The translations under genes and the position numbers were made by a program. From Marsupella aquatica (taxonomy: Eukaryota > Plantae > Marchantiophyta): a DNA stretch of 64,000 bases. Of this stretch, positions 2,088 to 36,800 are shown one piece after another (the stretch's first letter is position 1; every line of letters begins with the position of its first letter). The notes under the pieces are model-generated. The model searched no databases and was not told the DNA's origin. It saw nothing but the letters and a program-made list of their open reading frames with translations. The DNA lies in NCBI GenBank assembly GCA_973895155.1, contig OZ316899.1, positions 891,573 to 955,572 of the forward strand, in the 5' to 3' direction.

Positions 2088-5000
2088 TTATTCCTGATTA
2101 AAGTACCTTTTCAACCTATCATGATGCACTCTAGTAGGGAACACCTCTCCTTCAAGAGTAGCAAGCTGAATTGACCCATTAGCATAAACCTGGTGAACAA
2201 CATAAGGACCCAACCACCGAGTATGCAACTTGCCTGGAAAATGAGCATACCTACTGTCATAGAGTAATACCAGTTGTCCAGCAAGTAAAGAAGTTGGCTT
2301 CTTCAACTTCTTGTCATGATGTTGCTTCACTTGAGCTTGCTTCTTCTTCACTTGCTTGCTTGCCTCTTCCCGGATTTCCTCCAACTCCTCCAGCTGGTAA
2401 GCTCTCTCCATTAAACTCTGGTCAGCCTCCATTCTCTCCTCCACACTTACCCTCAAAGTAGGCACTTCAAACTCAACAGGTACAAGGGAGTGTTGTCCAA
2501 ATACTAGGTAGAAAGGACTATGGCCGGTTGTGGTCTTGAAAGCAAGGTTGTAGGAGTACACAGCTGAGTATAATTTGTCATCCCAATCAGTCTTGTGTGC
2601 CGCCACGGTTTTGTTCAAGATCTTGCCAATGATGCCATTAGCTCTCTCCGTTAATCCATTGGCCTTGGGGTGATAGGGGGTGGTCTTCCTATGCTTAATC
2701 AAGTAATGGTTAGTGAGCTCCTCCACAACTTCATTCAAGAAGTGAGTCCCCCTATCACTAACCAGCTCTAGAGGTGGCCCAAATCTGGTAAAAATCTGTT
2801 GATACATGAACCTTGCTACTGTGAGAGCATTATCCTTGCTGGTTGGTCTTGCCTCTACCCACTTAGTAGCATAATCAGTTGCAAGAAGGATGTATCGATT
2901 CCTTCTAGACCTGGTCACAGGAGTGATGGGACCTATGAAATCTATACCCCACTTCTCAAAAGGTGCAAGAGGTAAGATGGTGGTAAGAGGGTGATGCCTT
3001 GAGTGAGCTGGCTTACCTGTCCTTTGGCAAGGGTCACATCCCCTCACAAAAAGACTTACATCCTTATGAAGTGTTGGCCACCAATACCCTGCATCAAGAA
3101 TTTTCCTTGCTGTTGTTGCACTTGCATAATGGCCACCAGCCTCCTCCTCATGCATAGCTCTCATCACAATGGAGATTTCCTTCTTCTCCAAACACCTCCT
3201 TAGTCTCCCATCAACTCCTTCCTTGTGAAGGACACCCTTCACCAATAAGTAAGGTCTGATTTTTCTCAGGAAAACAGCAGCCTCCTCTTGGTTCAAATCT
3301 CTTGGTAGCCGGGTTGTGAGAAGAAATTGGATGATATCCAAATACCATGTATCTCCTCCACTTCCCACATGAAAGAGGTCTTCATCTGGAAACTGATCAT
3401 CCACCTCCTTCAAGTCCTCTTCTCCTTCAATCCTTGAGAAGAAGTCTGCATTCCCATGCTTCTTACCAGGCCTGACCCTCACCTCATAATCAAACTCTTG
3501 GAGCAACAAGATCCACCTTGCCACTCTACCAGTTACATCAGGTTTATTCACCATATACTTGAGAGCATTGTGATCAGTATGAAAGACCACCTTATAGCCC
3601 AACAAGTAGTGCCTAAACTTCTTACAAGAGTAGATGATTCCTAGAGCTTCTCTATCGGTTGGTGAGTAATTCTTTTCAGCTGGTGCCAATAGTCTACTTG
3701 CAACGTAGATAGGGTGATCCCTATTCTGGTCATCAAGTTGACTAAGCACCACACCAATACAAAAGCCAGACACATCCACATACACATGAAATTCTCTACT
3801 CCAATCTGGTGCTATCAAGATAGGGGCTTCAACCAACCTGTTCTTCAACTCCTGAAAACTTGCTAGCCTCTCAACTGAGGGTTCAACCTCAGCCCCCTTC
3901 TTAAGCATGCTGGTTAGGGGTAAAGCTACTTTAGCAAAGTCCTTAATGAACCTTCTATAGTAGTTTAAACATCCCAAGAATCCCCTCAACTCTGTCACTG
4001 AAGTTGGAAACTTGACAGCCATCCAAACAGCAACCTTCTCTTGGTCCACTTCTATGCCCTTCTTGGATACCTTGTGGCCAAGTAGTATCCCTTCTTCCAC
4101 ACCAAAGAAGCACTTCCCTGGGTGAAGCTTCAAACCAACTTCCCTACATCTTTGGAAGGTCATCCTCAAATGTTCAACATGGTCCTTCCCCCTTCCAAAA
4201 ACAGCAAAGTCATCTATGAATACTTCCAAGAACTTTCTCAAGTAGTCATGAAAGATATTCATCATCAACCTTTGGAACATACCAGGGGCATTACAAAGAC
4301 CAAAAGGCATCCTCCGAAAGGCATAAATCCCCCACTCAGTAGTAAAGGCTGTCTTCAACTGGTCCTCCTTCCTTATCCAAATCTGGTTGTAACCTGAGTA
4401 CCCATCTAGGAAGCTATACACTTCCCAACCAGCTACTAAATCAAGTACCATATCAGTAAATGGAATGGGATAGTGGTCCTTCTTAGTGGCCTCATTGAGT
4501 TTCCTAAAGTCTTGGCAAACTCGGATCTTAGGCTTACCATCCAAGCCTGGTTTCTTTGGTACTATGACAATTGGAGAAACCCACTCACTATTCAACACAG
4601 GATAGATGAAACCTGCTTCCAGCAATTTGTCTATCTCTTCCTTCACCATCAAGGAGTACTTGGGATTCATCCGATATTGCCTTTGTCTCACAGGTGAAGC
4701 TCCTAGCATCAAGTCGATTCTATGCTCACCAAGTTCAGGGTTTACACCAGTAAGATCCAAGTGACTCCAAGCAAACACATCCACATATTCACCTAGCAAA
4801 TCTTGGATAGTTTTCTCTTCACCTGATCCCAGGGCATTTCCCAAGTTGAAGGTCTTGTCTTGCTGGACAGAGATGGTTCTGTACTGCTCAGCTCGAATCA
4901 CCTCCATCTTGTTCCTCATTGTGGAGTCAAAAGTGCCCTCAAGTTGTGCCAACCTCATGCCTCCATAGACGGGTGCATTTTCAGCACTTAACTCCTCCTT

Positions 5001-8000
5001 CTCCTTGCTTGAATGCTGGTCTTCCTGAGTCTCATCCTCCTCTGAGTTTGCAGCCTTCAATTGGTCCTCTAGCTCCTTTATCTTGAGCTTTAACAAGGCT
5101 AAGTGCTTAGCCTTTAAACTCTGGTCATTACTCCTTGTCTTGATCTCAACTTGGGCAGCACCCTTGCTGGTCTGATCAACCTCCTGAGCCATTGTGATAG
5201 TGTCTTCTTGGTTGCTCTCCTTGGCTGAGGTCTCAGCCTGCTTCACCTCCTCGAGACTGGTCACTTCACTGAGACTGGGCAGAGGTGAATGGCTGGTAAG
5301 AGCCTCCTGCTCTTGCTCCTCTCCAAACACTTCTTCTTCAGTCCATTGGCTCACCATGTTCAACATGTATACCTCATCCTCATCAGATTCAGATTTGGTA
5401 CTCAACTCATCGGAAAGTTCAGAATCATATTCATCCAACTCATCAGTAGTCTCTCCTTGATGCTTGTCATGACCCCATGAAACTGAAGTGGCTGGTTTGC
5501 CAAACCTAAACTCCTTCTTGCCCCAATCAGACACTACTTTGGCTCCATATAGCCAAGGCCTCCCAATCAAGATTGGGTAAGTAGATGGCCTTGCTGGTCT
5601 CATCACCAAGTAATTCAACAAGAACTCCTGCCCCCCAATGAGAGTAGGTACTTGAGTAAGTGTCCCCACCGGTAGCACTCTTGCTCCATTTGCTAGCCTC
5701 ATTGTCCTTGCTGTTGGCTGAAGTTTCTTGAAACCTAGTTGTTGGGCAGTAGCCTCAATCATGATATTCACACCTGAGCCTCCATCAACTGGTACATACG
5801 AGAGTACACACCCATTTACTTGAACATCAATCTCAGGTGCTCCAAGGTCTTCACAAACCATCATCACATCAGCTGGGGTACCAACCTTTGGAAGCTTCCT
5901 TCTTCTCCTTCCTACCAACATCTCCTTCAGTTGCCTCCTATACAAAGGGTTGTCTTTGATCAGCTGCCCCACTGTAGCAGTAACCAAACAATCTTTCACA
6001 TCCTTCTTGATGTCATAAGAGGGTACCTTGCTGGTCTCTTTCTTCTCTTCCACCTCAGCTTTTTCCTTCAAAGCTTTAGCAACCTTCAGGTCTTTGTTGA
6101 TGGCCTCTTGATGCTCCTTAGCCTCCATCTCCTCTAGTTGCCTCTTGACTTCCTCATTCACCTTGGGATAGAAGAGCTTCGGATGGTCTCTCTTGTAGTC
6201 ACTATCTTCAGCTGGTGGGACTTGAACTTCTGCTCCAACTTCAACTTCGATTGGTGACTCCGTTGAGTGCTCCTTTCTCTCCTTCCTCTTCTTCCTCTCT
6301 TCCACTCTTTCCTTCTTTCTTGTGGACCTGGTAGACACCTTGTAACACACAGCTTCCTCCTCAGGTGTCTCCATTCCTGGTAGATCTGGCTGGTTCTCCC
6401 CACCAGCAACTTGTGTCACTCCATCTTTGGCCTCCTCTTGCCACTCCATACTCAAGAAGTTCACTGTGGCTTCACCGGGAGCCTTGGCAACCGCTGGTGG
6501 TGGTGCTTCTATCCTTCCTATCATCATCTTGGCAGCAGATCCAATAGGACAGTTGGCTGTGGTATGACCCTCCCTTTTGCACACAGCACAAAGAGGATAG
6601 GGAGCTCCTTGTCCCTGCCTCCTTGGTTCGGGGCAACTGTTGGAATAGTGCCCTGGTTTTTGACAGTTCCAGCAGATCACCACGGTAGTTCTTGCCACTC
6701 CCCCAGGTCCTTGAGGTCCCATTTGATCCACCATCCTTGGTTGAAGACCAGGCATCAGTTGAGGTGCCATGGGTGGAGCTGGTCTTCCTTGCAAAGTTCT
6801 TGGGCCTCCTGAAATCTGGTACACCATCTCCGGGGCTTCTTCATAGAAGTAGTCCACCACTTCACTTGCTTGATAAACATCGTTGGACTCTTCATTGACA
6901 TACTGAACTTGATTCCTCCAACCTTGACACTCTTGAGGTGTATGGCCAAAACTCTTGCACTTGACACACCATACATGGGCTCTATTCACCGGCACTTTTC
7001 TCCTATCAGGTTGCACACCAGCAAAGTGAACTGATAGGGCCTTGAGTTGGTTGGTGATCTCACTCATCTTGTTATCCATCACCTTCTTCTCCTTGGTTGC
7101 TGGTGTAGAACCTTCCACCAAGTTGAAGGTTGCAGATTTGTGGTGCTTACCACCTGGCTTCTTCTTGCTGGCTCTCCTCTTCTGGTCGCTTTTTCTCTTT
7201 GCCTTCTTCTTCTTCTTCTTCTTCTTCTTCTCGGAGTCCTCCTCAGAATCAGATTCTGAATCAGAACTGGAACTACTCTCCTCAGATTCCGACTCAGAAG
7301 TATCCTCAACTGAACTACTTGATTCACTTGAGCTAGAAGAAGAATCACTATAAGCAAATCGCTTCTTCTTTCTCCTACTCTTGGAACTAGAGATCTCAGC
7401 ACTCCTATAAGACTGAGCCGCCTCAATGGCCTCATCCAACGTATTAGGGTGAGATTGCCTTACTGAGACACCCATCTTCTTGGGTAGGCTTGCCACAAAC
7501 CAAGCCAACAACATGGAGTCTACTGGTCTGGGGTCAAGCTTGGTAGCTAACCTTTGAAACCTTTGCAGAAACCTCCTTATTGACTCCTTGGATCCCATTC
7601 TGATCTCTCCCATCTTGATCAGAGCTTCCGATTCTTCTCCCACCTTCCTAAACTCCTGCAAGAATGCTAGCTTGAAGGCATCCCAATCATTCTTGATGGC
7701 ATTTGATAGGCTATTGAACCAAGGTCTTGCTTCTCCTCTCAAGACCCCCGCCAAAGTGGTCAACTTAATATCAAACTCTCCATTGGCTTGGGCTGTCCCA
7801 ATGAAGTCCTCCAACCAAGCATCAGGATCCTCCTTGGGCTTGCCATGGAATGTCTTGTACTGAAATCTTGCTCTTTGAGTCACCACCATGGCTGCTTCTT
7901 GATCTTCACTTGTGTTGGTAGTGGAAGAAGATGTATCACTCCACCCTACACCAGGTTCCGCTTCAGCTTGCAAATGAATGTCCACCCAATCTGGTTGCTC

Positions 8001-8066
8001 CAACTGGTCACCAAAGTTGAAACTAAGAGAGGCTTCTTTTAGTGCTTGACTCCTTGTAGTGGGCAT
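2088..8066 (-). CDS. Gag-Pol polyprotein (single uninterrupted ORF; first ATG at 8066, ORF track extends to TTG 8156)
   Basis: Gag motif YKTFHGKPKEDPDAWLEDF, three CCHC knuckles, protease VDGGSG, RT FLDGYSGYNQI/PFGLCNAP/FIDD, RNase H YVDVS..EALGI..TDH, integrase GGH..CDPC/WGIDFIGP/SDRGTHF/ERANG. Confidence 0.97.
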   Translation of the reverse strand: MPTTRSQALKEASLSFNFGDQLEQPDWVDIHLQAEAEPGVGWSDTSSSTTNTSEDQEAAMVVTQRARFQYKTFHGKPKEDPDAWLEDFIGTAQANGEFDIKLTTLAGVLRGEARPWFNSLSNAIKNDWDAFKLAFLQEFRKVGEESEALIKMGEIRMGSKESIRRFLQRFQRLATKLDPRPVDSMLLAWFVASLPKKMGVSVRQSHPNTLDEAIEAAQSYRSAEISSSKSRRKKKRFAYSDSSSSSSESSSSVEDTSESESEESSSSSDSESDSEEDSEKKKKKKKKKAKRKSDQKRRASKKKPGGKHHKSATFNLVEGSTPATKEKKVMDNKMSEITNQLKALSVHFAGVQPDRRKVPVNRAHVWCVKCKSFGHTPQECQGWRNQVQYVNEESNDVYQASEVVDYFYEEAPEMVYQISGGPRTLQGRPAPPMAPQLMPGLQPRMVDQMGPQGPGGVARTTVVICWNCQKPGHYSNSCPEPRRQGQGAPYPLCAVCKREGHTTANCPIGSAAKMMIGRIEAPPPAVAKAPGEATVNFLSMEWQEEAKDGVTQVAGGENQPDLPGMETPEEEAVCYKVSTRSTRKKERVEERKKRKERKEHSTESPIEVEVGAEVQVPPAEDSDYKRDHPKLFYPKVNEEVKRQLEEMEAKEHQEAINKDLKVAKALKEKAEVEEKKETSKVPSYDIKKDVKDCLVTATVGQLIKDNPLYRRQLKEMLVGRRRRKLPKVGTPADVMMVCEDLGAPEIDVQVNGCVLSYVPVDGGSGVNIMIEATAQQLGFKKLQPTARTMRLANGARVLPVGTLTQVPTLIGGQEFLLNYLVMRPARPSTYPILIGRPWLYGAKVVSDWGKKEFRFGKPATSVSWGHDKHQGETTDELDEYDSELSDELSTKSESDEDEVYMLNMVSQWTEEEVFGEEQEQEALTSHSPLPSLSEVTSLEEVKQAETSAKESNQEDTITMAQEVDQTSKGAAQVEIKTRSNDQSLKAKHLALLKLKIKELEDQLKAANSEEDETQEDQHSSKEKEELSAENAPVYGGMRLAQLEGTFDSTMRNKMEVIRAEQYRTISVQQDKTFNLGNALGSGEEKTIQDLLGEYVDVFAWSHLDLTGVNPELGEHRIDLMLGASPVRQRQYRMNPKYSLMVKEEIDKLLEAGFIYPVLNSEWVSPIVIVPKKPGLDGKPKIRVCQDFRKLNEATKKDHYPIPFTDMVLDLVAGWEVYSFLDGYSGYNQIWIRKEDQLKTAFTTEWGIYAFRRMPFGLCNAPGMFQRLMMNIFHDYLRKFLEVFIDDFAVFGRGKDHVEHLRMTFQRCREVGLKLHPGKCFFGVEEGILLGHKVSKKGIEVDQEKVAVWMAVKFPTSVTELRGFLGCLNYYRRFIKDFAKVALPLTSMLKKGAEVEPSVERLASFQELKNRLVEAPILIAPDWSREFHVYVDVSGFCIGVVLSQLDDQNRDHPIYVASRLLAPAEKNYSPTDREALGIIYSCKKFRHYLLGYKVVFHTDHNALKYMVNKPDVTGRVARWILLLQEFDYEVRVRPGKKHGNADFFSRIEGEEDLKEVDDQFPDEDLFHVGSGGDTWYLDIIQFLLTTRLPRDLNQEEAAVFLRKIRPYLLVKGVLHKEGVDGRLRRCLEKKEISIVMRAMHEEEAGGHYASATTARKILDAGYWWPTLHKDVSLFVRGCDPCQRTGKPAHSRHHPLTTILPLAPFEKWGIDFIGPITPVTRSRRNRYILLATDYATKWVEARPTSKDNALTVARFMYQQIFTRFGPPLELVSDRGTHFLNEVVEELTNHYLIKHRKTTPYHPKANGLTERANGIIGKILNKTVAAHKTDWDDKLYSAVYSYNLAFKTTTGHSPFYLVFGQHSLVPVEFEVPTLRVSVEERMEADQSLMERAYQLEELEEIREEASKQVKKKQAQVKQHHDKKLKKPTSLLAGQLVLLYDSRYAHFPGKLHTRWLGPYVVHQVYANGSIQLATLEGEVFPTRVHHDRLKRYFNQE

Positions 8067-8172
8067 GCCACTCACAATCACCTTCTTATCTCCCTTCTTC
8101 TCTTGAACAGCAAACCTGCAAACACACCTCCAAGTCTTGTGGCTCCACTCCAACAAAAACTGTAAAGAGTTG

Positions 8173-8200: not shown

Positions 8201-11200
8201 TGGGACTCTATGTCAAACACTTGCCAAGGAGCTTAAGCGGCTTTTCTCCCCAAAAGACTACCTAATACCTGCTCCATGTCATACCAGGGTCACAAAGGAT
8301 TGACAAAACTTCTGAAGTGTGCTTACAATGTCCAATCACTCCATACATAAGTAGTTTCAACTCTCCACTTCTAGAGAGGTAGTCCCCTTGACTACTTTTG
8401 TACTCACCCCTTCCCCTCTCCTCTACTCCAAGGATCAGCAAGGGGGATCTCCGCTCCAAGCTGTCACCTTAGAGTAGATTCTCACACAAACACCCAAGAA
8501 CCCAAAGTACTTTCCTCTTCAAGCTTAAGTCTCCTCAAGACCCTCAAAGTAGTGTTACCCCTCAACCTTGCCCCCCTGGCCTTGGTTTGGGTCCACACAT
8601 CCCCTTTGAGCCCTAGAGAAGGCTCCTCTATCTAAGGACTCTTCCTCTTGTTCTTACTTCTTGTTAACACCACACACCAAGCAAAGTACTTTCCACCCTC
8701 AAGCTATAATCCTCTCTAAGTCTCAAAGTAATGCTATACCTTAACCTTGCCTCCTTGGCCTTGGTTTTGTACTAGCACATCCCCTTCAAGCTTAGACCAA
8801 GATTATACCATAGCATGGACTCTTCTCTTGCTCTCATATACTTCAAATGCACTCACACTTAATGGTCACAATGAAGATTGGTAAGTCTCCTTTTATTGCA
8901 TCACCTTTACAACAAAAGTTCACTACACATTCTCCACACTAAGCATGGACCACCTCTCCTTTCTCAAGCTTAGCCCTACCTTGGCAAGGTAGAGATTTCA
9001 CTTAAGAGATGAGACTCCCGGTCCCTAACAAATGAAAACTTCCTCCTTATATACTATCTCCTTCCACATCACACCAAGCTTGACCTGGGGTCCAACTATA
9101 CCTCCCCCAAGTCCTCCTAACACACAAAGTCCAACTCTATAGTTCATAGCCCACCCTACTACTTGCTATTTTGCCTCCTTCCAAGCCCTGGAATATGCCA
9201 CACATGAGTGGTATGCTTTGACTTCCAAACCTACTCCCACTTATGGTCCTCCTCACCAGCTTACCAACCCACTTGAAAGCTCGCAAAAAGAGTGAGTGAG
9301 TCTCAAGTTGTGCCTAGTCAAAGTTGGCCTTATTTTACTTGTAACCCCTTTACTACCCTAAGTAAACTACCCCCTATATTTACTTTTCTTAACTTGATGG
9401 CCTTACACCTTTGGCCAAAGGTAAGTACCCTTCTCTAGAGCCTAACTCAAGTGGTATGGGTGCAAGAAAGGTCAGCCCCTAAATCTGGTATTCATTCCCC
9501 TATGCCGACTTTGGTTTGCAAGTTGTCGGGACTCCCTCGTGGCCTCGGTTAAAAATATATTTGAGTGATTACTTTTCTGGGGTTCCACCTTCACCAGGGG
9601 GTGCCTTATCTTCCCCTAACTCAGCACAAAAAAATTTGGGCCCCAACGGATACCTCTAGCCAAAGTTATGCCCATTCTCCCAAGGCCTGTTTTTGGTGTA
9701 AAGCGGGTGTAAGCGGCGGCCCGATTACACTTACCTTACATGCCCCTTATGGGGATTCCACGTGTCATGAGGGGAGAGCACTCTCATTATACTCATGTTT
9801 CTTATGAAGAAATTGTAAGGACAGCAATGTTTGCAGCCATTTCTCTCTCGTGAATTCAATCTAAAACCACAGCATTCTCTATTGGATTCTTTCTTGTGCA
9901 GCAGTCCAGCTGATCAGCCGCCAGCCCCTCAATTTCACAGCCACCATAGCTCACAGCCAGCCTAGTCAATTTCGCAGCTAGCTCACCTCTTCAATTTTGC
10001 CGCTAGCAACACAGTCAATTTCGCAGCTAGCAGCACAGTCAATTTCGCAGCTAGCAGCACAGTCACATCAGCGCATTTACAGCACAACAACAGCAGATTT
10101 GAAGCACAGCAGCAGCAACCATAGCTTGATTCCTTCTCAGTCAAGCAGGTCTCTCTTCTCAATTTCGTAGCTGCCCACCTTTGCAATTTCGCAGCTAGCA
10201 GCAGCATCATTCAATTCAGCAGCATCAAGGCAGCAGCCAGCCAATTCTCATGAGCATCTCGTGCCTGATTAGTAGGAGCACCTCTAATCTAGTGTGCAGC
10301 TGTCATAGCAGCAAGCAGCCTTCCCAATTCAAAGCCAGCAGCGATCCTAATTTGCAGCCATAGCTCTTTTCCTTCTCAGCAGCCATAGCTTCTTCAATCA
10401 GCAACAGCCCTTGCTTCTTCAATCAGCAGCAGCCATTTCAATTCAGCCGCCCTTCCTTCAATTCAGCCGCCCTTGTGCTCAATTGATTCCTCAAGTAATC
10501 ATGCAGCACCTTTGGACAGCCTCCCGGTGCTTGACGTCCTCACCAGCCTCGTGCTTGCTCCTCCTTGCCTCGTGCTCGCTCCTCCTTGCCTCGTGCTCGC
10601 CGCGTGATCGTCGCCCACGCGGTTTACACTTAGAAAAAAATACATTTTTTTTTGGAAAAACAGCATTTTGGGGCGATTTTGGACCCCCCTCCAAAACTCA
10701 CACATAAGTCCAAAAGGACTTCTGAGTAGCTCCACTGATTCTATGGACATAGGACTATGTCCGGGTTTACTAAGATATAAACAAAACCCTATAACAACTT
10801 TTCTAAAATTAGGCAAAGAGGGTCAAGTCTTTATGTCTTCCAAAATTCTTCTCAACTTTGAGATGCTCCCAAAAAGTAACCAAGTGTGACAAAGTTGTCC
10901 CACAAGTTTCTAGGGATAGAGGGGACCATACTTAACCCACTTCCAAACTTGGAACCCCTACATTTACCCATCAGCTATTTTTCCCGGGACCCGCTATTTG
11001 GTAACTTTGATTTTTGCCAAAATACTTATAACTCCTAGGTTAAGACCCCACTTGACTTCATACTTTTTCAGGGTTCCCTAGGGACCTCCCAGCACCCATG
11101 GGAGAAATATCAGCCAAAAATAAGATGTCCGGTGTCGGGTCATTTTTCGGTCCCGACTTAGTCGCCTATTATAACTAAGGACGGAACTAGTTTCCTGCCC

Positions 11201-11399
11201 CTCCTATAGTAACTTGCTTACCCCTAGATAACTTTGCATAACTAAAATTCCCTCTTACCTCTACTAAGCTTCCCTTCTTACTTAAGTGCCCTAAACCTAG
11301 CTACTCTGATAGCACTAAAACTTTTTCCCTAACTATTTCCTCTTCTAAACGAAAGAATGTCATGTTTCTCTACACTAGCTGACACTGAGCCATCCCACA
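8201..11399 (-). repeat. F1 5' LTR, ~3.2 kb (inner boundary uncertain by ~10 bp)
   Basis: Right 2047 bp match the left LTR; TGGGA at 8201 mirrors TCCCACA at 11393..11399; candidate TSD TGGTC at 11400..11404. Confidence 0.85.
8484..8830. repeat. Degenerate ~180-bp tandem duplication inside the F1 LTR
   Basis: Two copies of CAAAGTACTTTCC..CTCAAGCT..CTCAAAGTA..AACCTTGCC..TGGCCTTGGTTT..CACATCCCCTT..GGACTCTT. Confidence 0.75.
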
Positions 11400-13964
11400 T
11401 GGTCCAGCAGAGATTCGTTCTCTCGCCTCGCCGCGTCCGTCTCCTCTCCTGCCTCCTGACATGCCTCCTCCAGCTGCTGGGCGTCGCTCGTCAGTTTACC
11501 CACCAGCTGGTCCTGCTTCTCGGCCTCGGTTTGGAGCCGCGCCATCTCGGCCTGCAGCGTGGCTATCTCCGTCGCGTCCCGCTGGGCTCGCTCCTCGGCC
11601 TCCTCCAGGTCTTTCTGCCAGGTGACAGCTTGTTTCTTCAAACTGTCAATCTGGTTCCGGAGTCGTGTAATCTCGGCCTCGTTCCCAGCTTTGGCCTGTT
11701 CGGCTAGGGCGGTAAGAGCGTACGCCTTTGCTAACAACTCATCGGCAGCTGCAACCTTGGGTCGTAGTTGCAGAAGCTCAGCCTCTTGAGCCGCTACTTC
11801 GTTCTTTAGGTACACGGACTCCACCCGGTACCGCTCTATCCTCTGAAGGGCCTCCGACTGGGCCCGACCTGCCTTTACGGCGGCAACCAACTCCTGATTG
11901 AAGAAACAGGCTACCTTCCGGGCCATGAACTCCCCGGTATCCCGGGCAATTTAATGAGAGAAATCTCCCAGAAGCCCGTTCAGAAACGTACCCTGTACGA
12001 AGAGTTCCGGGTGGTCCAAGTTGTGCCTGTCCGGATTTGGGCACGGGCAGACATCAACACGCGCAGGGGCCGGGGCAGTGACGTCCAGCCCTGGGGACAT
12101 AACGTTGGAAGGGGCTGGAGTGTCCTCCTGCAGCGATGTCCGGTTCTCCGGAATTGCCACCAGCGGGTCCTTGGGAGACCCGGGTTCGGGTAAGACCTCT
12201 GCCGTACCAACTTCTGTACTTAGCCCGGCTAGTTGGGTCGCATCAAAGGTTGCGACGACCGACCCCTCCGGCGCCTCCTCGGTTACGATTACAGCTATTT
12301 GTGGAGGTGGGGTGGGTGAAGTTGGCGTGTCCACTGGACTTCGGGCCTCGGGTTGGGGCCGTCTCTCCAATGCCGGAAAAACCCACCTAGCTGGGACCAG
12401 CTTTGTAACGTTGATGCGGGGAAGGGTTCGTCGATCAAACCGGGCGTACCACTCAAGAATGATTTCGATGTGGCTAGCGAAATACGCCTTCCCACCAATG
12501 TACAGCGTCTTCCTTCGCCGCTCCATCTCTTCATGGAATTTCTTAGCGAAGTACGACGCCCATTTCCTAGGTCGATAGTTCTCGACCTGGATAACCTGGG
12601 CAGCGGAGATCTCCCCCCGGGGTTCCATCATGTGGAGAGCGTACCTCTGGAACTCCAGCCGCTCAGCTATCTCGGGCATGAGGCAGGTCCTCATCACGAA
12701 CCCGTTGTCTACTGATCCCTCTGAGGGAAAACTTGAAGATTGGTACTTGGCCCCCTTGCCCCCGGGAGCCCGTGATTCGACTCGATGGTCACCTTCGGGT
12801 AACCCGAAGATCATCTTGAGCCGTTCTTCTGTGAGGGACATATTCCTTCCCCGCAGCCGAGTCTGTTGACATACGTCGTCATAATTCTTGACGAATTCTG
12901 TCATGTCCTCCCCGTAGTACCTGCAAGTGTTCCAGGGGAGAGAGGTGAGGTGCTCAAATCCCTGAGTCTTCAGGTACACCGCATGCTTGGGATGGAGGAT
13001 GTTGCTATGAACGTTTCCCCCATGCGATGCATGGTCACCTTGGCTACGGCTACCGTGGCCAACGGTAACCCGGACGCAGTGGCGGATTCCTTCCTCTTCT
13101 TTCCCCGTGACTGACTCGGGGAAGGTGATACTTCCCCATCCTCCCGATCGGGCCTGGGGAGTGCCACTGCGGTTGGTAACGGGCCCGGGGCGGCCACGGT
13201 CACTATGTTGTCTGCTGGGGCCGCTCCTGGGGTCAGAGCAGGGGGTGGGGACGATATAGTGTCGGCCCCCGAGCGCTTGTTCCTCTGGGCCGCCTGGTCA
13301 AGGGTGGGGTAGCCTCGTCGTCATCGCTAAGATCCACAGTGTTGATGACGGAGCGTACCTGTGCTGGCTGGGTGATAGGTGGTGGGGTTTGGCTAGGCTA
13401 CGGCTGAGGCTGAGGCTGAAGCTGAAGCTGAGGTTGAGGCTGGGGTTGCATGGGCACGGGTACGGGTACGGGTACGGGCCTGGCTGAGTTGGTCATGTTG
13501 GTTGATGGCCGAGTTCCCATGAAGCTCTGCAGGTGCTGGTAGAAGTTCTCCGAAGCGAGTGCGGACGCCCTTGTCGAACGGTTGGTACTGGACTCGCCGT
13601 TAATGACAGCCCGAACCTGGGCAGGGATGTGGTCGAAGTGATGTCGCTGCAGGTCGATTGTACCCGAGATATTGAAGACCTCGTCCGGAAGCCGAAGCAA
13701 TGCTTCCCAGAACCCGATATATTTGTCTCCGTTGCAGAAGTACCCAGATACCTCAGCTGGTCAGTAAAGCTCGCTCTGAGACGGGTAGTCAAAGTTAAGG
13801 ACGTAGTGGTGTCGTCCTGCTAGGCGGATGGCTCTCTCGTATTCGCGTTCGATCTCGTATCGGCGCGGGTTGGCGTGTTTCAATGAATCGGCCAAGTGCC
13901 TTCCGGTAGATAGGAACTGCGTCCAGAATCGAATGGCCGAGCTGGAGAGGATCGTGTGCGACAT
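11400..13964 (-). pseudogene. F3 LTR-encoded PMD-like plus coiled-coil protein, with stops and frameshifts, truncated by F1
   Basis: AIRFW N-terminus, in-frame stops at 13761 and 13398, core GFEHLTSLPW/EFVKNYD/LTEERLKMIFGLPEG/DNGF/PRGEISAAQV aligning to the F2 LTR ORF; coiled coil in 11400..11926. Confidence 0.75.
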
Positions 13965-14280: not shown

Positions 14281-17200
14281 TCATGGCACAGGCACACTGT
14301 TGGCATCTGCATCTCTGAATTCGCCTCCTTCAGCAAATGCATCTACCCTTGTCACAGGAATGAAGTCCCCGCTATCATGAACTACAGGCACTTGGTCTGA
14401 ACGCCGACGATCAAAGGCACTATGAGAGTGTAAATGAAACTCAAGGTTTGATCCTTCCATCCGACGTTGCCTGGCCTGTTTATGACACACTACACGCCAA
14501 CCTGGGGAGTCTTCCACATCCAGGAAGAAAGCTTGCTCCACCTGACTAGGAAACACAAATGGCTCAGACCATTCGGGCAATTTCCCTCTGAAATTGGCCA
14601 GCAAGAAACCGTCGTTGTCTCTCTTCATGGTAGCCCTGTTACCAAGCCAATCCTGCCGCACCCATGAACCTTTCATAAGAATCACAGGACTGGACACCGC
14701 CCCATAGTCCAGAGCCCATATGTCAACTAATTCTCCCACATATCCCATCTCCATCCAGGCCCTGTCGTGATTGTGGCTCTGTTGCTCAAATACAGTGATG
14801 AGCCCGCAGTCATTCGTCACCTTGTAGGCACTGTCACCATCCTTCACTCGGAAGTGATTCCCATATGCTCTCATCCGTTTGTAAGTCTTCACTTTCAGGC
14901 TAGGGGCATTAGACAGTAGGTAAACATCTGCATCCATGTCTGGGTGGGTCTCGTGATGCTCTCTAATTGCCACTCTGATCCACTCCATGAAACCTGGAAA
15001 AGTTGTTCCTGCAGTGGGATGGGCCGCCTTCAATGACTCATACTCCCTGAACGAACAACCACACAGCATTAGCTTGGGTAAACATGAACAGGCTGAAGGA
15101 GAAAACCACACGAACACAACATTTAAGCTCATGAACTGGATTATAGCACATGTATGCACTCACTATATCCAGGGTTCCATCACCACAGTGTTGTGCAATA
15201 CAAAGTCATGTGCCAAGTCTCTCATAGATATGGTCAGGTTCTTTGTGGTTGCAGCCCCTTCCAGTACTTCACCTATCACCCCTTCCTCCTCATCAGAATT
15301 CCACACCCTGGTCTTCACATGCTCATATTGTGCTATGTATTCGGTCAAAAATCCCAGAGTCTCATCCTTGATGTAACCTTTAGCCATGCTTGCTTCAGAT
15401 TTGTAATATGTTCTCACGTGACCTTTGAGTAGCTTCATGTACCGTTCCAAAGGGTACAACCAACGAGCACTCACAGGCCCAAATTGGTGTAGCTCTTCCA
15501 CAACATGGACAAGTAGGTGGGTCATGACATCAAAAAATGCGGGAGGAAAATAAATCTCCAGGTCACACAGCACCTGAGCGACATCTTCTGTCAGTTGTGG
15601 GAAGTGTGTTTCATCCCAAACCTTCACACAAATACGACGAAACACATCATTGAGTCGCATGATCACAGTACGAACAGGCTTCTGCAACAGGCCCCTCAGG
15701 CATAAAGGCAACACCTGTTGCATCAACATATGGTAGTCATGGCTTTTCATACTACCAAGCTTTCTAGTCATGATATGCTTCTTGAAAGCACTGCCATAGT
15801 TTGAAGGAACCTTCAAAGAACTCAACCTCTGCACAAATAGTTCCCACTCTGTGTCTGTCAGAACATAGGGCGCTTGGTACTTCAAGAGCACATCAGCTCT
15901 GTGGGCATGTGGCCTCAACCAAAGATGGGGTTTCATTCCCCTCTGTTCAAGATCCAATCTCACTGAACCAGTGTCTTTCTCTCCACACAAGAATCTGAGT
16001 AGACTCTCACAAATATTCTTTTCAATGTGCATAACATCAATGTTATGTTTGCTTGGCTCAAACTCCTGCATCGTTGCAATGCAAAAGCGTCAGGAAATGC
16101 CTCAAGTTTAGTCTCTCTCTTCGAAATGAATGCACATGCTCTGAACCAAAACATGTATCCCAATTAGCATCAACTCCAAGAGGCTTACCCTCCAGTACTT
16201 GAGCTCCAAGTCCAATATGCTCAGTCTTTTTACACCATATCGCTTTATTGGATCACTCACTCCATCTTCCCTGCCCCCTCGTTTGATATAGTCATCCCTC
16301 AGTGCTCCCCACTGCCTGATCTCCTCTTTGGTCACTCGTGCCGGGGGTCCACGTTGCTCAATCTCATTGCCAAAGTGTGCAATCAGTGCCTGTCTTTCTC
16401 TGTAAGGGTGATCTGCCTTCAGAAAATGACGATGGCCCATGTATATCACTTTCTGCAGGGCTCTGGAGTACTCACTGGTGACATTGCGCCCACAGATAGT
16501 ACAAGCACAATATCCTTTTGTTGTTTGGCCTGATATCATCCCATAGGCTGGGTAGTCAGCTATAGTCAGAATGACAATGGCTCTAAGGATGAATGGGTTT
16601 AACCTCCCAAGCCTCTGTAGGACATCATATGTGAGAACTCCTTCCTCCCAAAGCTTTCTCAATTCCTCCACTAGGGGAGCAAGAAACACATCTATGTTGG
16701 CAGATACAGCACTGTCTGGCCCTGGTATCAGTAGGACCATCAGAACAAAAAATCGCTTTGTAGTCATCCAAGGAGGAAGGTTATAATTCAAAATAGTTAC
16801 AGGCCAGCACGAAAATTTGTTGTTCTTGTCTCCAAATGGGTTTACCCCATCCAATGACAGCCCAAGTCTGACATTCCTCGGCTCAGCAGCAAATTCGGGA
16901 TACATCTCATCTATGAGTTTCCATTGCCTTGAATCTGCAGCATGTCGTTGTAGCCCATCATCACTTTTCTTGTCAGTTGCCCAAGTCATCATCTCCGAGA
17001 TGGCACGGCTTCTGAACATCCGCTGAAGTCTGGGAATGAGTGGAAAATGACGAAGTACCTTGGCGGGAACCATAGACTTTCCTGAGTTCCGATACCTGTG
17101 CTTCCCACACTTAGGGCATGTCAACGATTCTTTATACTCCTTTCTGAAAAGAACATGCCCATCAGGACAGGCATGGATCGAATCATAGTTCAATCCAAGA

Positions 17201-18012
17201 TTAGATATGCATCTTTTTGCCTCGTACATGTTCTTGGGCAAAATATTACCATCTGGTAGCACAGTTGTTTGCAAGAATGCCAACAACTCAGAAACCAAAA
17301 CGTTGGGGACATTGTGGTTGCCGCAAATGTTCAGGAACATGATGACAAATCCCAGTTTAGAACATTTGCTACCGGGGTACAAAGACTTCCTGCCTTCCTG
17401 TATTTGCAGGGGAGAGCCAAACATCCCATCATGCCCAGGGGTTTCCTGCCCTATCTCAAACTCATCAAGAGGCTCTTCGACAGGGGGCACACTTGCATCT
17501 GCAGCCGTATCCTCTTCGTTGTCCAGCCCATCATGAAATGCATCCAAGTCTTGGAAGATGTCTCTCACCATCTCTTCCACATGAATTCCTTCGTCACGTG
17601 GTGCTGCCTGAGCACCATCCCGTTGGAGAGCTGACAACCCACAGAGACTAGCTACAACATTTTCAAATGCACCAGGCAGAACCTCACTTGCCCGTCTTGC
17701 AGCATTGGCAGTATCAAATTCTAACCTCTACTCCTCGTCGGAAGAATCTTCCTCTGCAGGATCATTCCAAACTCGATGTCGTGGATCTCTTCCATGAACC
17801 GCGATATGCCGCCAAACCTCATTCAGACCCCTGGTACGGGATCCTTGGCAGATTGCACAAGGACATCTCATCCTACTGGCTCCTGAAAGTCTGGTTCGTA
17901 ACCTTTCACGCTGCCAAAGCTTATTATCATGGCGTGATATCCTTGTGGGATGATGCAAAGGCAATGCCTGTGCCCTGGGCTGGGTCTGGGGAGGGTGGTG
18001 ACCAGGGTGCAT
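14281..18012 (-). pseudogene. CACTA/En-Spm TnpD (Tnp2) transposase, spliced, with a premature stop
   Basis: Transposase-associated CPCxxC..H domain; Transposase_21 motifs IHACPDG, LRHFPLIPRLQRMF, RNVRLGLSLDGVNPF, NYNLPPW; DUF4218-type DVMHIEKN, KSHDYH, FFDVMTHLLVH, RWLYPLERYM; DUF4216-type PFVFPSQVEQAFF; GT-AG introns ~16066..16188 and ~15047..15163; in-frame TAG at 17728. Confidence 0.93.
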
Positions 18013-19910: not shown

Positions 19911-20591
19911 TCACAGCCAAGATATGTGATCTCTCACAGGAGTGCGCGAGGTAGGATCAATGGCATGGCGATGACAATAAAATATCCATCGATCAACACC
20001 ATGTGCAGAGTGATCATAGATTTCTCTGTCACAAGCATAACCCTCTGCTTGATGATCTTTCAGGCAATGATAGTGCCACATAGTGGGACACCTAGCACAG
20101 TGGACTATGTCAGTCCAGTAGTCATCATCATGCTCACCACATGCCTTGCACCTATGAAGTGGGCAAGCTGTGGCATGAGCAGGCAAACACTCAAAACAGA
20201 AAAATCTCACACAAAAACGGTCTGGACATTTCCTAACATTTGCTGCAGCATCAACAGAGCCCTCATAGGACCCCAACTTCCCACACTGTGCACACTTAGC
20301 CTGCTTCTCCAAACAATCAGTGCACATCCAGTCTCCCTGGTGTGTTGACGGGAGGCCCACCCCTGGACAGTTGTTTTCTGCAGCAAGGTCAGACTCCGGG
20401 TTGAGGTGGAAATGCCTCATGCAAGGGCCCTCACAAATGACCAGGCCCCCACCATCGTCACAAATGGCACAACAATGAGCTGCCTTCTGGAAAATTTGAC
20501 TTGCAGAGAAGTTAGTAGCATCTGCCCCAAGTACACCTGTGTTTCTCACCTCTGTCACACGCTTTTTGGCTTGAATTTTAGGCCGTGCCAT
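19911..20591 (-). CDS. Stand-alone EDM2-type PHD-finger module protein (226 aa)
   Basis: CAICDDGGGLVICEGPCMRHFH..C..C..C..CGKLGS..CPLHRC..C..CARCP..H..CL..FYCHRHAID..TPVRDHI matches the recalled EDM2 PHD region; no stops or introns. Confidence 0.85.
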   Translation of the reverse strand: MARPKIQAKKRVTEVRNTGVLGADATNFSASQIFQKAAHCCAICDDGGGLVICEGPCMRHFHLNPESDLAAENNCPGVGLPSTHQGDWMCTDCLEKQAKCAQCGKLGSYEGSVDAAANVRKCPDRFCVRFFCFECLPAHATACPLHRCKACGEHDDDYWTDIVHCARCPTMWHYHCLKDHQAEGYACDREIYDHSAHGVDRWIFYCHRHAIDPTSRTPVRDHISWL

Positions 20592-20602: not shown

Positions 20603-20746
20603 AGATAGACTCTACAATTTAGCAGACTGCACAGAAAGTAAAATATATTTAGCATTTAAGGTACAAAGGCATTTAGATAGACTCTACAATTTAGCAGACT
20701 GCACAGAAAGTAAAATATATTTAGCATTTAAGGTACAAAGGCATTT
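20603..20746. repeat. Perfect 72-bp tandem duplication
   Basis: 20603..20674 = 20675..20746. Confidence 0.95.
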
Positions 20747-21363
20747 GCTACTGCAATGAATTGGAATGGCCACACAAGGATGCAGAGCACACATACTTTT
20801 GGTATGTTGAGCCCACACACAAAACTGATCCCCTAATACAATTTCTCCACCAACACCTCAATTTTAATTGTGGCTATGATTCACCAAAGGAGATCTGCAA
20901 CAACATTTCATGCATTTGAATCACATACAACAGTCGTGACATGTAAAACAGGCATTCTTCGAAGAGGATTGGTATGAAGCAGTGTCATAAGGGTTGAAAT
21001 TTATACATCCTAAATAGGTTATGATAGTGGCTGAGACAAATAAGTGAGGCATAAATCACATTTTGCATATTATCACATGGCCCATTAATTCATTCAACGT
21101 TGCAATGTTCACTAGGTTAAAGCAGTCATGAAAGTAGTCTTTCAATAGAGACTTTTATGCGAGTTTGCTAGCCTCTTAAATTAGGATATTTTGCTTAGTA
21201 CAGGCATAATAGGATATAAGTTATGTACTGTTGACCCTAAACCCTGGACCCAAAATTGCTCATACATCAAAATTTTAAGTAAATATCCTCTGTGTTGAAG
21301 TCAGAGTGTTAAGCTATAGGTCAATGGTATCTGGTCTGTGCATGCGGTGTGACAAGTGGTCCT

Positions 21364-21813
21364 CTAGAGCATGTGATCCAAACATGTGTAGACACCAAAG
21401 TCACCGGTGGTGGGGTCTGGGAGGGCAGGACAAGTGACATCACCAGGCACACTGCAGGATGGCGAGTGGTTCCAGATGATACATTGTGCTCTGTGCAAAA
21501 ATCGGCATCCAAGAGAACGGTCATCCAATTCTGGGCCAGAAGCCCTACAGGCAGGACAGTCATATTGGCAACTGTGTACACACCCTTGGCACCTAATTTG
21601 TGGCGGGTCATGTACAAGAGACACAAATACCAAGGATGTCGGGAAGGGTACTGAAGCAGGTAGAGGCCGGCTGTAGTTGTTCTTGGAAACAACAGGGTAC
21701 TCAAAGTACCATGCAGACTGGGCTGGAAGGATCCCAAGTCTGACATACTCAAGGCGCAACATCTCTGCCTTGCGTGCAAGTCGCACATGTTCAGCGTTGC
21801 GGGTCCTCACCAT
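21364..21813 (-). CDS. Cys/His-rich putative zinc-finger protein (149 aa), unassigned
   Basis: ATG start, basic N-terminus, CQGC..CQYDCPAC..C..H..C..H..C..C..CLDH; same strand as the neighbouring genes. Confidence 0.5.
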   Translation of the reverse strand: MVRTRNAEHVRLARKAEMLRLEYVRLGILPAQSAWYFEYPVVSKNNYSRPLPASVPFPTSLVFVSLVHDPPQIRCQGCVHSCQYDCPACRASGPELDDRSLGCRFLHRAQCIIWNHSPSCSVPGDVTCPALPDPTTGDFGVYTCLDHML

Positions 21814-22821
21814 AAGTGTTGCTTTCGTTGTGATGTCCTCTGTTCACGTCCTTTGATGAGCAAGGTGAGCAGGAGGTCGACTTGCCTCGCCAACAGCAAC
21901 CACCTAAACTAATCAGTTCCCACTCATTGTCTTGGTTCCAACTACAGGTCATAGTATACACATAGCATGAAACGTGCATAGTACATATTTGATTCTGAGT
22001 TTATGAGTTTCCTAAGACAAAGAGCTTGGTGATAAACCCATATTCTCGACGGACATGTATATCAATCATATTAAACTCCTGTTTTTTCATCCAGAAAGAC
22101 CGAAAGTCTCACCTTGCAGGTTGCAGCAGAGAGAAAATTCACTGGTTGTCGTGTTGTGCAAGTGAACCTCCACTGATGCCCCGGTGTAGCCCCTCAGATG
22201 CAGGTGACACTTACCAACTCCCAAGTTGCCTGGTCTAACAGAAAATGCTTATATCTTCAGAACTTTATAGAGCAAGTACATGATCACATACTTCTGGATC
22301 TATTCATATTTGGAACTCTTGCCAACTACAACTCCCATTATGCACAAGCTCACATCAACAGAGAAAGATACAGAATGCATACTTACTATGGCTCTAAGCA
22401 CCTTCACTACCTTGTTGAACCCAGTCCTGAAGTCTTTTCAGCGTGTTTGTTGTGCTGTCTCCTTTGGCACCCAACACCTTAGTCCTTGATGTAACAGAAT
22501 GCGATTTTACAAGTTAGATGCTTTGGAACCTTCTATGGTCTTAGCTGAATTGATGTCATCGTAAGTGGTGAAAGACAAGGAAGACGAAAGCTGGTTGAAG
22601 AGCTATGGACAACACACTAGCATGAAGTGCTTCAACCAATCCACTGCCAAACGGAACTCTTACACAGTCACATTCTTTCAGTAAACAGAAACTCAGTCAA
22701 ACTTCATAATCAAAGTACAGACTCTGAAGGACCAAAGGAGGATGTTGTGAGTTTCTCTGTTGTTTAATGTGTTACCCTTCTAGTTTCGAAGTTAGCAAAT
22801 GCTGAATAATGTGTCTACCAG

Positions 22822-31030: not shown

Positions 31031-31190
31031 GTGTAACATCATCACATGTGCTTTGATAATATCTGCAGTGTAAAACTTGTGCAACATCATGACATGTGCT
31101 CTGATAATATCTATGTAGTGCAATGTAGAACTAATTGTGCAACATCATCACATGTGCACTTGTTAATTATCTTTGTAGTGTAGTGTAAGG
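31031..31190. repeat. Imperfect ~50-58-bp tandem repeat x3 (AACATCATCACATGTGC..)
   Basis: Units near 31035, 31084 and 31140. Confidence 0.8.
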
Positions 31191-35100: not shown

Positions 35101-36800
35101 CATCTTCCTCTCGACCAACTGGATGCCTGCATATGGATTATTGCGAGTAGGCCGGCGTAACGGATTTCTCACTACACCATATGTTACTACCTCTGGCCCC
35201 TTGATAGGGGAATGCTCGCGTTCTCGTGTTGCTTGTGTTGCCAACCTCCTCCCGTGGCGTCGTATGTTTAGAGGCTCCTTGTCCTCCTCCACTTCCTCAA
35301 GTGGTGCAGTGATCTGCATCCGCTCCTGTATAGGCAACACTGGTGCAAAAGATTGGCTTCTTGCATAACGGCAAAGCAATTGCAGATGGTACCCTAGTCT
35401 GGATACCGCTCCCTCCCCAATGCTCTGCTTCTCTTCGTTTAATGCCTTCTTTAACTGCATTAAGAGATAGCCGTTGTAGTCTCGGCTTGCATCGATATTC
35501 TCTACCAAAAATACCTGGGCTTTGCCGATTTCTGCTCTCGGCAAGGTACAATGCAATGTGACTCTCAGGAAATCAATCAGCTGCCCTATATGTGGGTTGG
35601 TACATTGATTCCTAAAAAACCCATTCTTAGTGGAAGGCCCTGGAAATGACCTGAACTGGTCGTCCGGCAACGTCTTCCTCTGCTCCACCTTTGTTTTCCT
35701 TCCTGTTGGTAAAGCGAACACGGCTTCGATAAGCGCAGGAGTTAATTCGAACACCTTTCCATACAGCAGCGTTGTGTTGGAAGAAGCCTCCCAGCATCCC
35801 ACGAAGTCCAACAGATCCTCATCCGGTATGTCTACCATTCTCCAAGGCAACCTGACAAAGCCCTCCAACCTAGTGTCATTCATATATCCTGCATATTTGT
35901 TATCCTGAACGGCACTGAAGACCTCATCCTCATCTCTTGCGAACTGTAATTGTAAATCGGCAGGTAACTTGTTCGCCCACCCTTTCATGTTTTTATCTTC
36001 TACAGCCCGATCTCTAATTGGCCCGGATTCCATCTTGATTGGTCTCTCCAACCTAGTTCGCTTTGTTGGAGTTGTAGATGCCGAACCTCCCTTGCGCTTC
36101 ATCTCTTCAGTGCCTGAATACTCCCCAAGAATAGCTGCCTTCGTCCACTTTGCAGTGTGACCCTTCAATTCCCAAAGTGGTTGCCCGGCATTCTTGATTG
36201 CCTCCCTGATCCCCACAACCTTATTCTCCCGAATTAGCAATTTGTCAAGCTCCGCACTGGTGGGTGTCCACGAGAACTTTTCCAATACCTCCTCCGTATC
36301 TACGAATGCCGATTTGTGAATTCCCCACAATCGCGCAAGCTCTGCTCGTTCTCTGGCTGCGCGCTCCGGCTCAACATCTTCATACGTAGGTATCAGCTGC
36401 CTTGCTTCTTCAAGCAAACAGGCCCAAAACTTCCTTGCCTGATTCACCGTGTTCATTCCACCGAATGCCAAGAACCTGCGCAATTTCTCAAACCACCTCC
36501 CCCGTTCAATTGGCAGCTGATTCGCTAGGTTGATTGAACAAGCAATTGCACTAGTGTACAGAGTGTCGGTCCCCTCCTTACGAAGTCGCCTCCTGATGGC
36601 TTGCGTGATCAAACCCTGATTAGGTCATAACCCTAATCCCACTTAATCGCGACCGTTGGATCAGATCCCATCACAATTTCCCCCGAACATATTGAAATCG
36701 GCTTCGATCTTTATAACTCCCTAATTATATCTACCTAATCTTTATTTAGCCATTATTTTAGGCTTAACTAAGTACTTCGTGATCCTGGCACGGCATCACA
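32184..36800 (-). mobile_element. Solo LTR (4617 bp) of an F2-related family
   Basis: TSD GACAC at 32179..32183 and 36801..36805; ends GGCATCACA like F2; start TATGGCACGGTTCCCA aligns to F2 TGTGGTGCGTCCCA; no PBS, PPT or pol adjacent. Confidence 0.85.
33142..36612 (-). pseudogene. LTR-encoded PMD-like plus coiled-coil protein inside the solo LTR (one frame, two premature stops)
   Basis: ORFs 34528..36612, 34264..34521 and 33142..34257 are in one frame separated by TGA and TAG; strongly similar to 58751..62410; likely start ATG 36456. Confidence 0.9.

Follow-up and report, generated by a model that had tools for sequence, protein, structure and literature searches.

A stand-alone EDM2-type PHD module encoded upstream of a CACTA transposase in the liverwort Marsupella aquatica

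A minus-strand gene of the liverwort Marsupella aquatica encodes, in 226 codons, a basic tail followed by a triple PHD finger module of the type found in the plant protein EDM2. The gene occupies positions 19911-20591 of a 64,000-nucleotide stretch of contig OZ316899.1 (assembly GCA_973895155.1, positions 891,573 to 955,572 of the forward strand; this whole stretch is referred to here as the window), and it lies upstream of, and in the same orientation as, a transposase of the CACTA superfamily. We conclude, with a probability of roughly 0.9, that it is a real accessory gene of a transposable element (TE) and that its product is of EDM2-PHD origin. EDM2 binds H3K9me2 via its PHD module (PMC9910501, PMC7529245), and together with AIPP1 (EDM3) and ASI1 it favours the production of full-length transcripts across heterochromatin that lies within genes (PMC9910501, PMC7529245, PMC3632883).

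Results

The open reading frame encodes a complete EDM2-type PHD module

The open reading frame (ORF) runs from ATG to TGA with no internal stop. Its basic N-terminus begins MARPKIQAKKRV and its C-terminus reads ID-x4-TPVRDHISWL, after which comes the stop. Three Pfam families match in order, namely PHD-1st_NSD (residues 39-93), PHD_NSD (96-140) and PHDvar_NSD (148-180), and the same order of fingers is found in EDM2 and its relatives. The bit scores of 23.9, 17.9 and 23.2 are all slightly below the respective gathering cut-offs of 27, 23.9 and 27, a shortfall that is compensated by the E values obtained against EDM2 proteins in a profile search (about 1e-26 to 1e-33) and by BLASTP (2e-27). 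All 24 Cys/His zinc-ligand positions are present, the sole change being a His to Cys replacement in the second finger. Finger 1 (C41, C44, C53, C57, H62, C75, C90 and C93) has a long insert between H62 and C75, like the first PHD finger of EDM2 and NSD proteins; the fifth ligand of finger 2 (C100, C103, C122, C127, C132, C135, C143 and H146) is Cys where EDM2 has His; and finger 3 is of the variant type (C148, C151, C165, C168, H173, C176, C206 and H209). An alignment of 70 sequences from TEs and hosts has 16 columns without any variation and 22 that hardly vary. The segment C-x-x-C-D-x-G-G...R-x-F-H of finger 1, which is common to AIRE-type readers of histone H3, is nearly invariant in the same 70 sequences, and a sequence search of the PDB with the ORF returned AIRE PHD1 and the PHD1-3 region of NSD2.

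When the search was restricted to proteins of similar length, five relatives were found, all in Logan contigs (217-245 aa, 37-82% identical to the PHD ORF). A profile built from the ORF and these five closest relatives, searched without a length limit, gave 566 protein matches, of which small stand-alone proteins came first and proteins of approximately 700-1,600 aa followed after a clear gap in score. These long proteins cover profile positions 33-215, and cluster look-ups name them as EDM2 of Arabidopsis and other flowering plants, homologues from Selaginella and Diphasiastrum, and liverwort proteins. In a direct BLASTP comparison, residues 41-225 align with residues 225-432 of Arabidopsis thaliana EDM2 at 30% identity, the alignment ending IDEELLTPVRDHVKF versus IDPTSRTPVRDHISW, and the Marchantia homologue is 32% identical (E 1e-29). 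The motif ID-x4-TP-x-RDH that closes the module after finger 3 is also present (IDPTSRTPVRDHI versus IDEELLTPVRDHV in EDM2), and its core reads TPKRDHI in Marchantia.

The predicted fold points in the same direction. An AlphaFold (AF2) model made from the 70-sequence alignment has a predicted local distance difference test score (pLDDT) of 87.5 and a predicted template modelling score (pTM) of 0.81, with residues 1-23 of the basic tail disordered; an earlier model from six sequences (pLDDT 45) was discarded. Among Swiss-Prot models its top match is EDM2 192-430 (TM 0.66 by query, E 1e-12), followed by PHD1-3 of NSD2/3. The top solved structures are the PHDv-C5HCH tandem fingers of NSD2/3, H3-bound forms included, with modest Z scores of 5.6-5.8, and finger 1 of the model also matches single H3-bound PHD fingers. 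The resemblance to NSD1/2/3 extends to the Pfam families themselves, which were defined on NSD proteins, and to an alignment of NSD2 661-794 with residues 32-174 of the ORF. The NSD fingers, however, are parts of animal SET-domain methyltransferases, and the similarity is distant.

What the protein shares with EDM2 is confined to the module at residues ~222-432 of the latter: three fingers in identical order, with the same ligand spacing and closing motif. EDM2 itself is a protein of 1,297 aa with DNMT1-RFD-like and Mtase_EDM2 domains, whereas the transposon protein has neither, is encoded by a multi-copy, transposon-linked gene and carries Cys as the fifth ligand of its second finger. When five EDM2-family proteins were compared with the window by tblastn, the only matches lay at 19917-20510. 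The N-terminal DNMT1-RFD-like domain that is present in EDM2 relatives is absent from the PHD ORF and from the whole window, and the C-terminal Mtase_EDM2 domain (PF26055), which defines the EDM2 clusters in the Atlas, had no match in the window. Judged by its sequence, the protein carries an EDM2-type PHD module and is not a full-length member of the EDM2 family. The first-pass annotation of this DNA had described an intact ORF with a basic N-terminus, a Cys/His spacing and terminal motif matching those of the EDM2 PHD module, and the remainder of EDM2 missing, and each part of that description was borne out. An exon of a longer spliced EDM2 gene, the reading that it had named as contrary to its own, is rejected by the lack of any other EDM2 part in the window.

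The PHD gene is multi-copy and travels with CACTA transposases

Distinct pieces of Logan contigs from three organisms, numbering between 295 and 5,689 per run, cover the 5.9 kb between positions 16000 and 21900 at 90-100% identity, and a single-copy gene is therefore excluded. The PHD ORF and the interval 21319-21900 have summed depths several times that of the remainder of the compared stretch, although depth sums obtained from contig pieces are not copy numbers.

Linkage to the transposase recurs in copies that are strongly diverged from the one in the window. In contig L004 a PHD ORF (44% identical) is followed about 500 bp further on by a Transpos_assoc ORF that continues into a transposase 59% identical to that of the window. 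A JGI metagenome contig (L006) has PHD and then Transpos_assoc; another contig (L001) has PHD and then an ORF for a BRCT protein; and a 13-kb ENA contig (L009) has PHD, BRCT, Transposase_21 and DUF4218 in succession. The last of these is collinear with the window by tblastx and gives no alignment of intergenic DNA. In five independent, diverged copies (37-82% identity) the PHD ORF precedes a CACTA transposase of the same orientation, and a tandem-BRCT gene stands between the two in some of them but not in others. In all copies the genes share a strand and are closely spaced (400-1,900 bp). Between the window and L009 the PHD proteins are 41% and the transposases 47% identical, and this similar divergence fits joint descent rather than repeated capture. 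The CACTA lineage that carries the PHD gene is old and high in copy number. A linkage census of metagenome contigs recovered only angiosperm-type host EDM2 genes (44-56% identical to Arabidopsis EDM2), none of them with a transposase.

These data agree with the first-pass annotation, which had placed the gene next to a CACTA transposase and had called it transposon-borne: the transposase, with its Transpos_assoc, Transposase_21, DUF4218 and DUF4216 domains, starts 1.9 kb downstream on the same strand, the gene is multi-copy and transposase-linked in independent lineages, and its ratio of non-synonymous to synonymous substitution rates (dN/dS) is 0.28-0.35 (see below). As to the other outcomes that it had listed as contrary to this view, hundreds to thousands of contig pieces were found rather than one syntenic host gene, and linkage to CACTA transposases was seen in L004, L006 and L009 rather than being absent.

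The transposon proteins form one clade beside a liverwort EDM2-like paralog

The first-pass annotation had also proposed a phylogeny against EDM2 and EDM2-like proteins. In an unrooted IQ-TREE analysis (LG+C20) of 76 PHD modules, ten transposon-type PHD proteins form a single clade with support of 100/100 on a stem of 1.3 substitutions per site. The clade is sister (98/86) to an EDM2-like paralog of liverworts represented by Marchantia Mp1g03210 and a Riccia protein, with a Calypogeia homologue added by BLAST, while the principal EDM2 orthologues from liverworts, lycophytes and seed plants are placed elsewhere in the tree. Both branches are long, and long-branch attraction could explain why they group as sisters. 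The paralogs of Marchantia (768 aa), Riccia (692 aa) and Calypogeia (747 aa) resemble the transposon protein in having the PHD module at the C-terminal end and no Mtase_EDM2 domain, the Calypogeia protein ending 5 residues past RDH. They differ from it in being annotated chromosomal genes with about 500 more N-terminal residues, including an RFD-like stretch. We found no literature on this liverwort RFD-PHD paralog. The simplest reading of the sequences would be that a transposon captured the 3' part of a gene of the RFD-PHD type, and it may also be that the reverse took place and that the liverwort paralog was domesticated from a transposon. Short PHD-only proteins annotated as EDM2 also occur in grasses (Brachypodium, 311 aa; Miscanthus, 287 aa); these form a clade of their own and appear to be host genes, and the stand-alone module is therefore not unique to transposons.

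The gene is maintained as a separate coding unit by purifying selection

The start MARP is common to most copies. Among the nine contigs in which the end of the ORF was compared, which represent eight distinct copies (L004 and L005 are identical in sequence), the stop comes directly after W-L/I in five of the eight and between a few and nine codons later in the other three; the stop codon itself varies (TGA or TAA), as does its context. This variation bears on the idea that the ORF is the 5' exon of the BRCT or transposase transcript, and hence part of a spliced PHD-transposase fusion. In favour of such a fusion are the common strand and the 400-1,900 bp spacing in all copies, and proteins of En/Spm are indeed made by alternative splicing. 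Against it, every copy terminates at W-L/I or within at most nine codons of it, there is no conserved GT donor at the end of the ORF, the transposase has its own conserved ATG, and none of the 150 best profile matches is a fusion of PHD fingers with Transposase_21. A splice donor overlapping the stop (CT/GTGA in the window) was considered and rejected, the GT being absent from the other copies. We regard a fusion as very improbable.

Comparison of the three close copies in pairs gave dN/dS values of 0.28-0.35, and the 97.5% bootstrap limits did not exceed 0.53. At the DNA level the ORFs of close copies are 81-87% identical, and their flanks are 70-72% identical with many gaps or cannot be aligned. 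In distant pairs the synonymous sites are saturated, yet the protein is still 37-53% identical, and the ORF is intact in lineages that share only 37-44% of its residues. The PHD gene is under purifying selection. The same evidence speaks against a neutral passenger, that is a transduplicated fragment of a host gene, or a single-copy host gene that merely sits beside a transposon. It is true that CACTA elements often acquire fragments of host genes and that the intactness of the window copy is not significant in itself (below), but dN/dS is well below 1 across lineages with saturated synonymous sites, and linkage to the transposase in five independent contigs, very high copy number and a monophyletic TE clade are not what either version predicts. 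To this explanation we give the least credence of all.

The copy in the window is not wholly intact. Its BRCT gene has a nonsense TAG at 19207-19205 and its transposase another at 17730-17728, at codons that read CAG and TGG, respectively, in nearly all other copies from four runs, which identifies both as nonsense mutations private to the window copy. Both changes (CAG to TAG, TGG to TAG) are C-to-T or G-to-A transitions, such as deamination of methylated cytosine would produce, although two events are too few to serve as a test. Two nonsense codons in ~1,450 neighbouring codons lead to an expectation of 0.3 in an ORF of 226 codons, which would stay open with a chance of about 7/10. That the PHD ORF is open here is thus by itself no sign of selection. 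We accordingly rejected the proposal that this particular copy is open because it is selected. The first-pass annotation had set a stop-free PHD ORF against neighbours that are not stop-free; one nonsense codon each in the BRCT and TnpD-type transposase genes upholds the observation, whereas the contrast is not statistically meaningful and the other stops in the transposase lie in introns.

Discussion

Possible functions of the PHD protein

The retention in finger 1 of the AIRE-type segment C-x-x-C-D-x-G-G...R-x-F-H makes it reasonably likely that the protein is a reader of H3 tails, and its basic tail, which resembles a nuclear localisation signal, suggests that it is probably nuclear. Such a protein would bind H3 tails according to their modification state, like the EDM2 module. 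Without the RFD-like and methyltransferase-like domains it would not do the job of EDM2 and would work for the element instead. Our tentative preference is for a tethering or licensing role, in which the PHD protein would be the chromatin-reading subunit of the transposition machinery and would couple the transposase, together with the BRCT protein where one is present, to marked chromatin, probably heterochromatic and of the H3K9me2 type. The purpose of this coupling would be access to silent copies or integration into safe havens. We prefer this role slightly over that of an anti-silencing decoy, the two being about equally likely, on three grounds. The gene has a constant position directly upstream of the transposase and in the same orientation; the tandem BRCT protein is a second reader, of chromatin or DNA damage, that accompanies it in two deep lineages; and reader domains of mobile elements serve targeting elsewhere. 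Integrases of chromoviruses (Ty3/gypsy) carry a fused chromodomain. The PHD finger of RAG2 binds H3K4me3 and targets the RAG recombinase (PMC5175335). In both of these systems a mobile-element recombinase is paired with a reader of histone marks, and RAG2 is moreover a separate protein whose gene adjoins the transposase-derived RAG1 gene. They belong, however, to unrelated classes of element and lineages of reader, the chromodomain is fused to its integrase, and the PHD protein described here is known from its sequence.

The first-pass annotation had suggested an anti-silencing factor or decoy. A decoy of this kind would occupy the H3 marks used by host readers (the EDM2/AAE complex, or the CMT/SUVH loop), and the consequence would be weaker maintenance of heterochromatin or less effective premature termination on copies of the element, which would allow the long transcript of the transposase to be produced. 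No design for a competitor is simpler than a bare reader domain that has a nuclear-type tail, and purifying selection shows that the protein matters to the element. Plant DNA transposons also encode accessory proteins, such as VANC and the TnpA of Spm, from genes beside the transposase, as is the case here. TnpA of Spm is an example of an anti-silencing protein encoded by a transposon. VANC of VANDAL21 is another (PMC5735166, PMC10398659), and it differs from the PHD protein in being a sequence-specific DNA-binding protein unrelated to PHD fingers and in having a demonstrated effect against silencing where that of the PHD protein is hypothetical. EDM2, for its part, recognises H3K9me2 and controls transcription across heterochromatic TEs (PMC7529245, PMC9910501). 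On the other hand, to judge from Arabidopsis genetics, blocking EDM2 would raise rather than lower H3K9me2 at many loci (PMC7529245), so that it is hard to see what the element would gain; a decoy able to diffuse would benefit every TE and not only the one that carries it; and strong divergence from EDM2 is not expected of a protein that competes for exactly the same mark. We rank a decoy just behind tethering.

The module could alternatively have given up histone reading and serve as a zinc-finger adaptor for protein or DNA in the transpososome, for instance in a TnpA-like joining of element ends. En/Spm TnpA brings the ends of its element together, and a gene of the TnpA type was not recognised next to the transposase in our case. 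The long stem branch after capture, the ligand change in PHD2 and the modest matches to solved histone-bound PHD fingers (Z at most 5.8) are compatible with such a function. PHD1, however, keeps the segment with which fingers of the AIRE/TRIM/BHC80 type pair with the H3 tail, nearly invariant in TE and host proteins alike, and we think an adaptor of this sort unlikely.

Several observations weigh against the view that the PHD gene is an accessory gene of the element with a role in tethering. That it lies inside the element is suggested by linkage and not by mapped ends. In a further ENA contig of 19 kb (L012), the 10 kb upstream of a transposase 50% identical to that of the window contain neither a PHD nor a BRCT gene. 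Not every member of this transposase group therefore carries the PHD gene, which some lineages can do without, the cassette having been lost from, or never having been present in, some of the related ones. The protein search that found intact ORFs favours intact copies, and two contigs (L010 and L011) hold PHD copies with a premature stop, which is expected for a transposon family. In these two contigs a product of 166 aa was called, and in-frame homology runs on to the usual end. The sequencing runs behave as DNA, with no splice-like joints. Finally, a protein that is made up of the domain only has no obvious surface for binding a transposase, and the stem of 1.3 substitutions per site, together with the His-to-Cys change in PHD2, may permit altered specificity or a loss of histone binding.

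A more far-reaching version of these ideas, which we hold to be rather unlikely, is that a CACTA lineage took over the reading module of EDM2 and, without the effector domains, uses it to mimic EDM2 in a dominant manner, thereby hijacking or blocking the EDM2/AAE pathway. The BRCT protein would then be its partner on the DNA-damage side, and the liverwort RFD-PHD genes could be either its source or the result of re-domestication. If true, a reader domain would have become a weapon in the epigenetic arms race between transposons and their hosts.

Relation to known systems

Transposons whose integrase is fused to a chromodomain are known, and a few encode anti-silencing proteins. Full-text searches of the literature found no paper that links CACTA/EnSpm elements with EDM2-type PHD or BRCT genes, and no such link was seen on inspection of a 2026 atlas of Arabidopsis transposon products. 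Host-derived accessory genes of transposons and chromatin readers of mobile elements are already known; apparently new, in that we found no description of it, is a DNA transposon that has retained, as a conserved gene of its own, the histone-reading module of a heterochromatin factor from its host. EDM2 is the factor with which plants cope with transposons inside genes, and a copy of its reader that is owned by a transposon therefore provides a testable handle on how DNA transposons choose or escape heterochromatin, and on how very high copy numbers arise in large plant genomes. The protein is small, is confidently folded in silico and comes in many natural variants.

Other features of the window

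In the 5' to 3' direction of the minus strand, the features around the PHD gene are two Cys-rich ORFs, a duplication, the PHD gene itself, the tandem-BRCT gene and the CACTA transposase (Table 1). The BRCT gene has a homologue in the corresponding position in L001 and L009. Apart from the TAG at 17730-17728, the in-frame stops of the transposase are located in short introns. One of these, 123 nt long, has clean GT-AG borders; the second is less clear and, spliced as drawn, would leave a stop. The stretch at 21319-21900 that holds the Cys-rich ORFs has the highest summed depth of the compared stretch. Neither of the diverged contigs L004 and L009 contains a counterpart of these ORFs, which may be candidate members of the cassette. 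The duplicated unit is single in a contig from another organism (joint 20644-20730).

Table 1. Coordinates of the PHD gene, its fingers and neighbouring features in the window
Feature	Position	Strand	Remarks
Stand-alone PHD gene, 226 aa	19911-20591	minus	Basic tail (residues 1-38) and EDM2/NSD-type triple PHD module (39-226)
PHD finger 1, residues 39-96	20304-20477	minus	Pfam PHD-1st_NSD; invariant columns; resembles AIRE PHD1
PHD finger 2, residues 97-146	20154-20303	minus	Pfam PHD_NSD; alignments
Variant PHD finger 3 and C-terminal extension, residues 147-226	19914-20153	minus	Pfam PHDvar_NSD; match to NSD2/3 PHDv-C5HCH tandem, Z 5.8
Perfect 72-bp tandem duplication	20603-20746		In the 5' leader or promoter region, 12 bp before the PHD start codon
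Tandem-BRCT gene, 290 codons	18446-19318	minus	Between PHD gene and transposase; TAG at 19207-19205
CACTA transposase, TnpD type	14281-18012	minus	Transpos_assoc, Transposase_21, DUF4218 and DUF4216 in one frame
Short introns in transposase	16188-16066; ~15163-15047	minus	Gene-call gaps at matching places in three other contigs
Two overlapping Cys-rich ORFs	21321-21813	minus	Upstream of PHD gene; without family match
Right long terminal repeat of very young Ty3/gypsy insertion	9353-11400		100% identical to 1-2048

No convincing pair of CACTA terminal inverted repeats was found in the window, L009 or L012 by inverted-repeat and CACTA-consensus checks or by CACTA/TAGTG pairing combined with checks for 3-bp target duplications; positions 26993 and 31180-31185 are tentative candidates for the right end. 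The end of the transposon downstream of the transposase is not visible in the window because a long terminal repeat (LTR) of a Ty3/gypsy element bounds that side. The two LTRs of this element (1-2048 and 9353-11400) match each other at 100% identity across 2,048 bp or more, and its pol ORF is at 2088-8156 on the minus strand. Repeats of 24 bp at 9929-10199 were considered as subterminal repeats of the transposon and rejected, since they belong to the gypsy LTRs. The end of the right LTR at 11400 overlaps the last codons of a coiled-coil ORF (11375-11926). Downstream of the transposase, a 342-aa ORF at 11951-12979 on the minus strand shows ~29% identity, with E values of 1e-17 to 1e-19, to portions of large accessory ORFs that lie within the giant LTRs at 35359-35886, 40504-41028, 47916-48443 and 60971-61498, and the family of accessory genes is therefore common to different element contexts.

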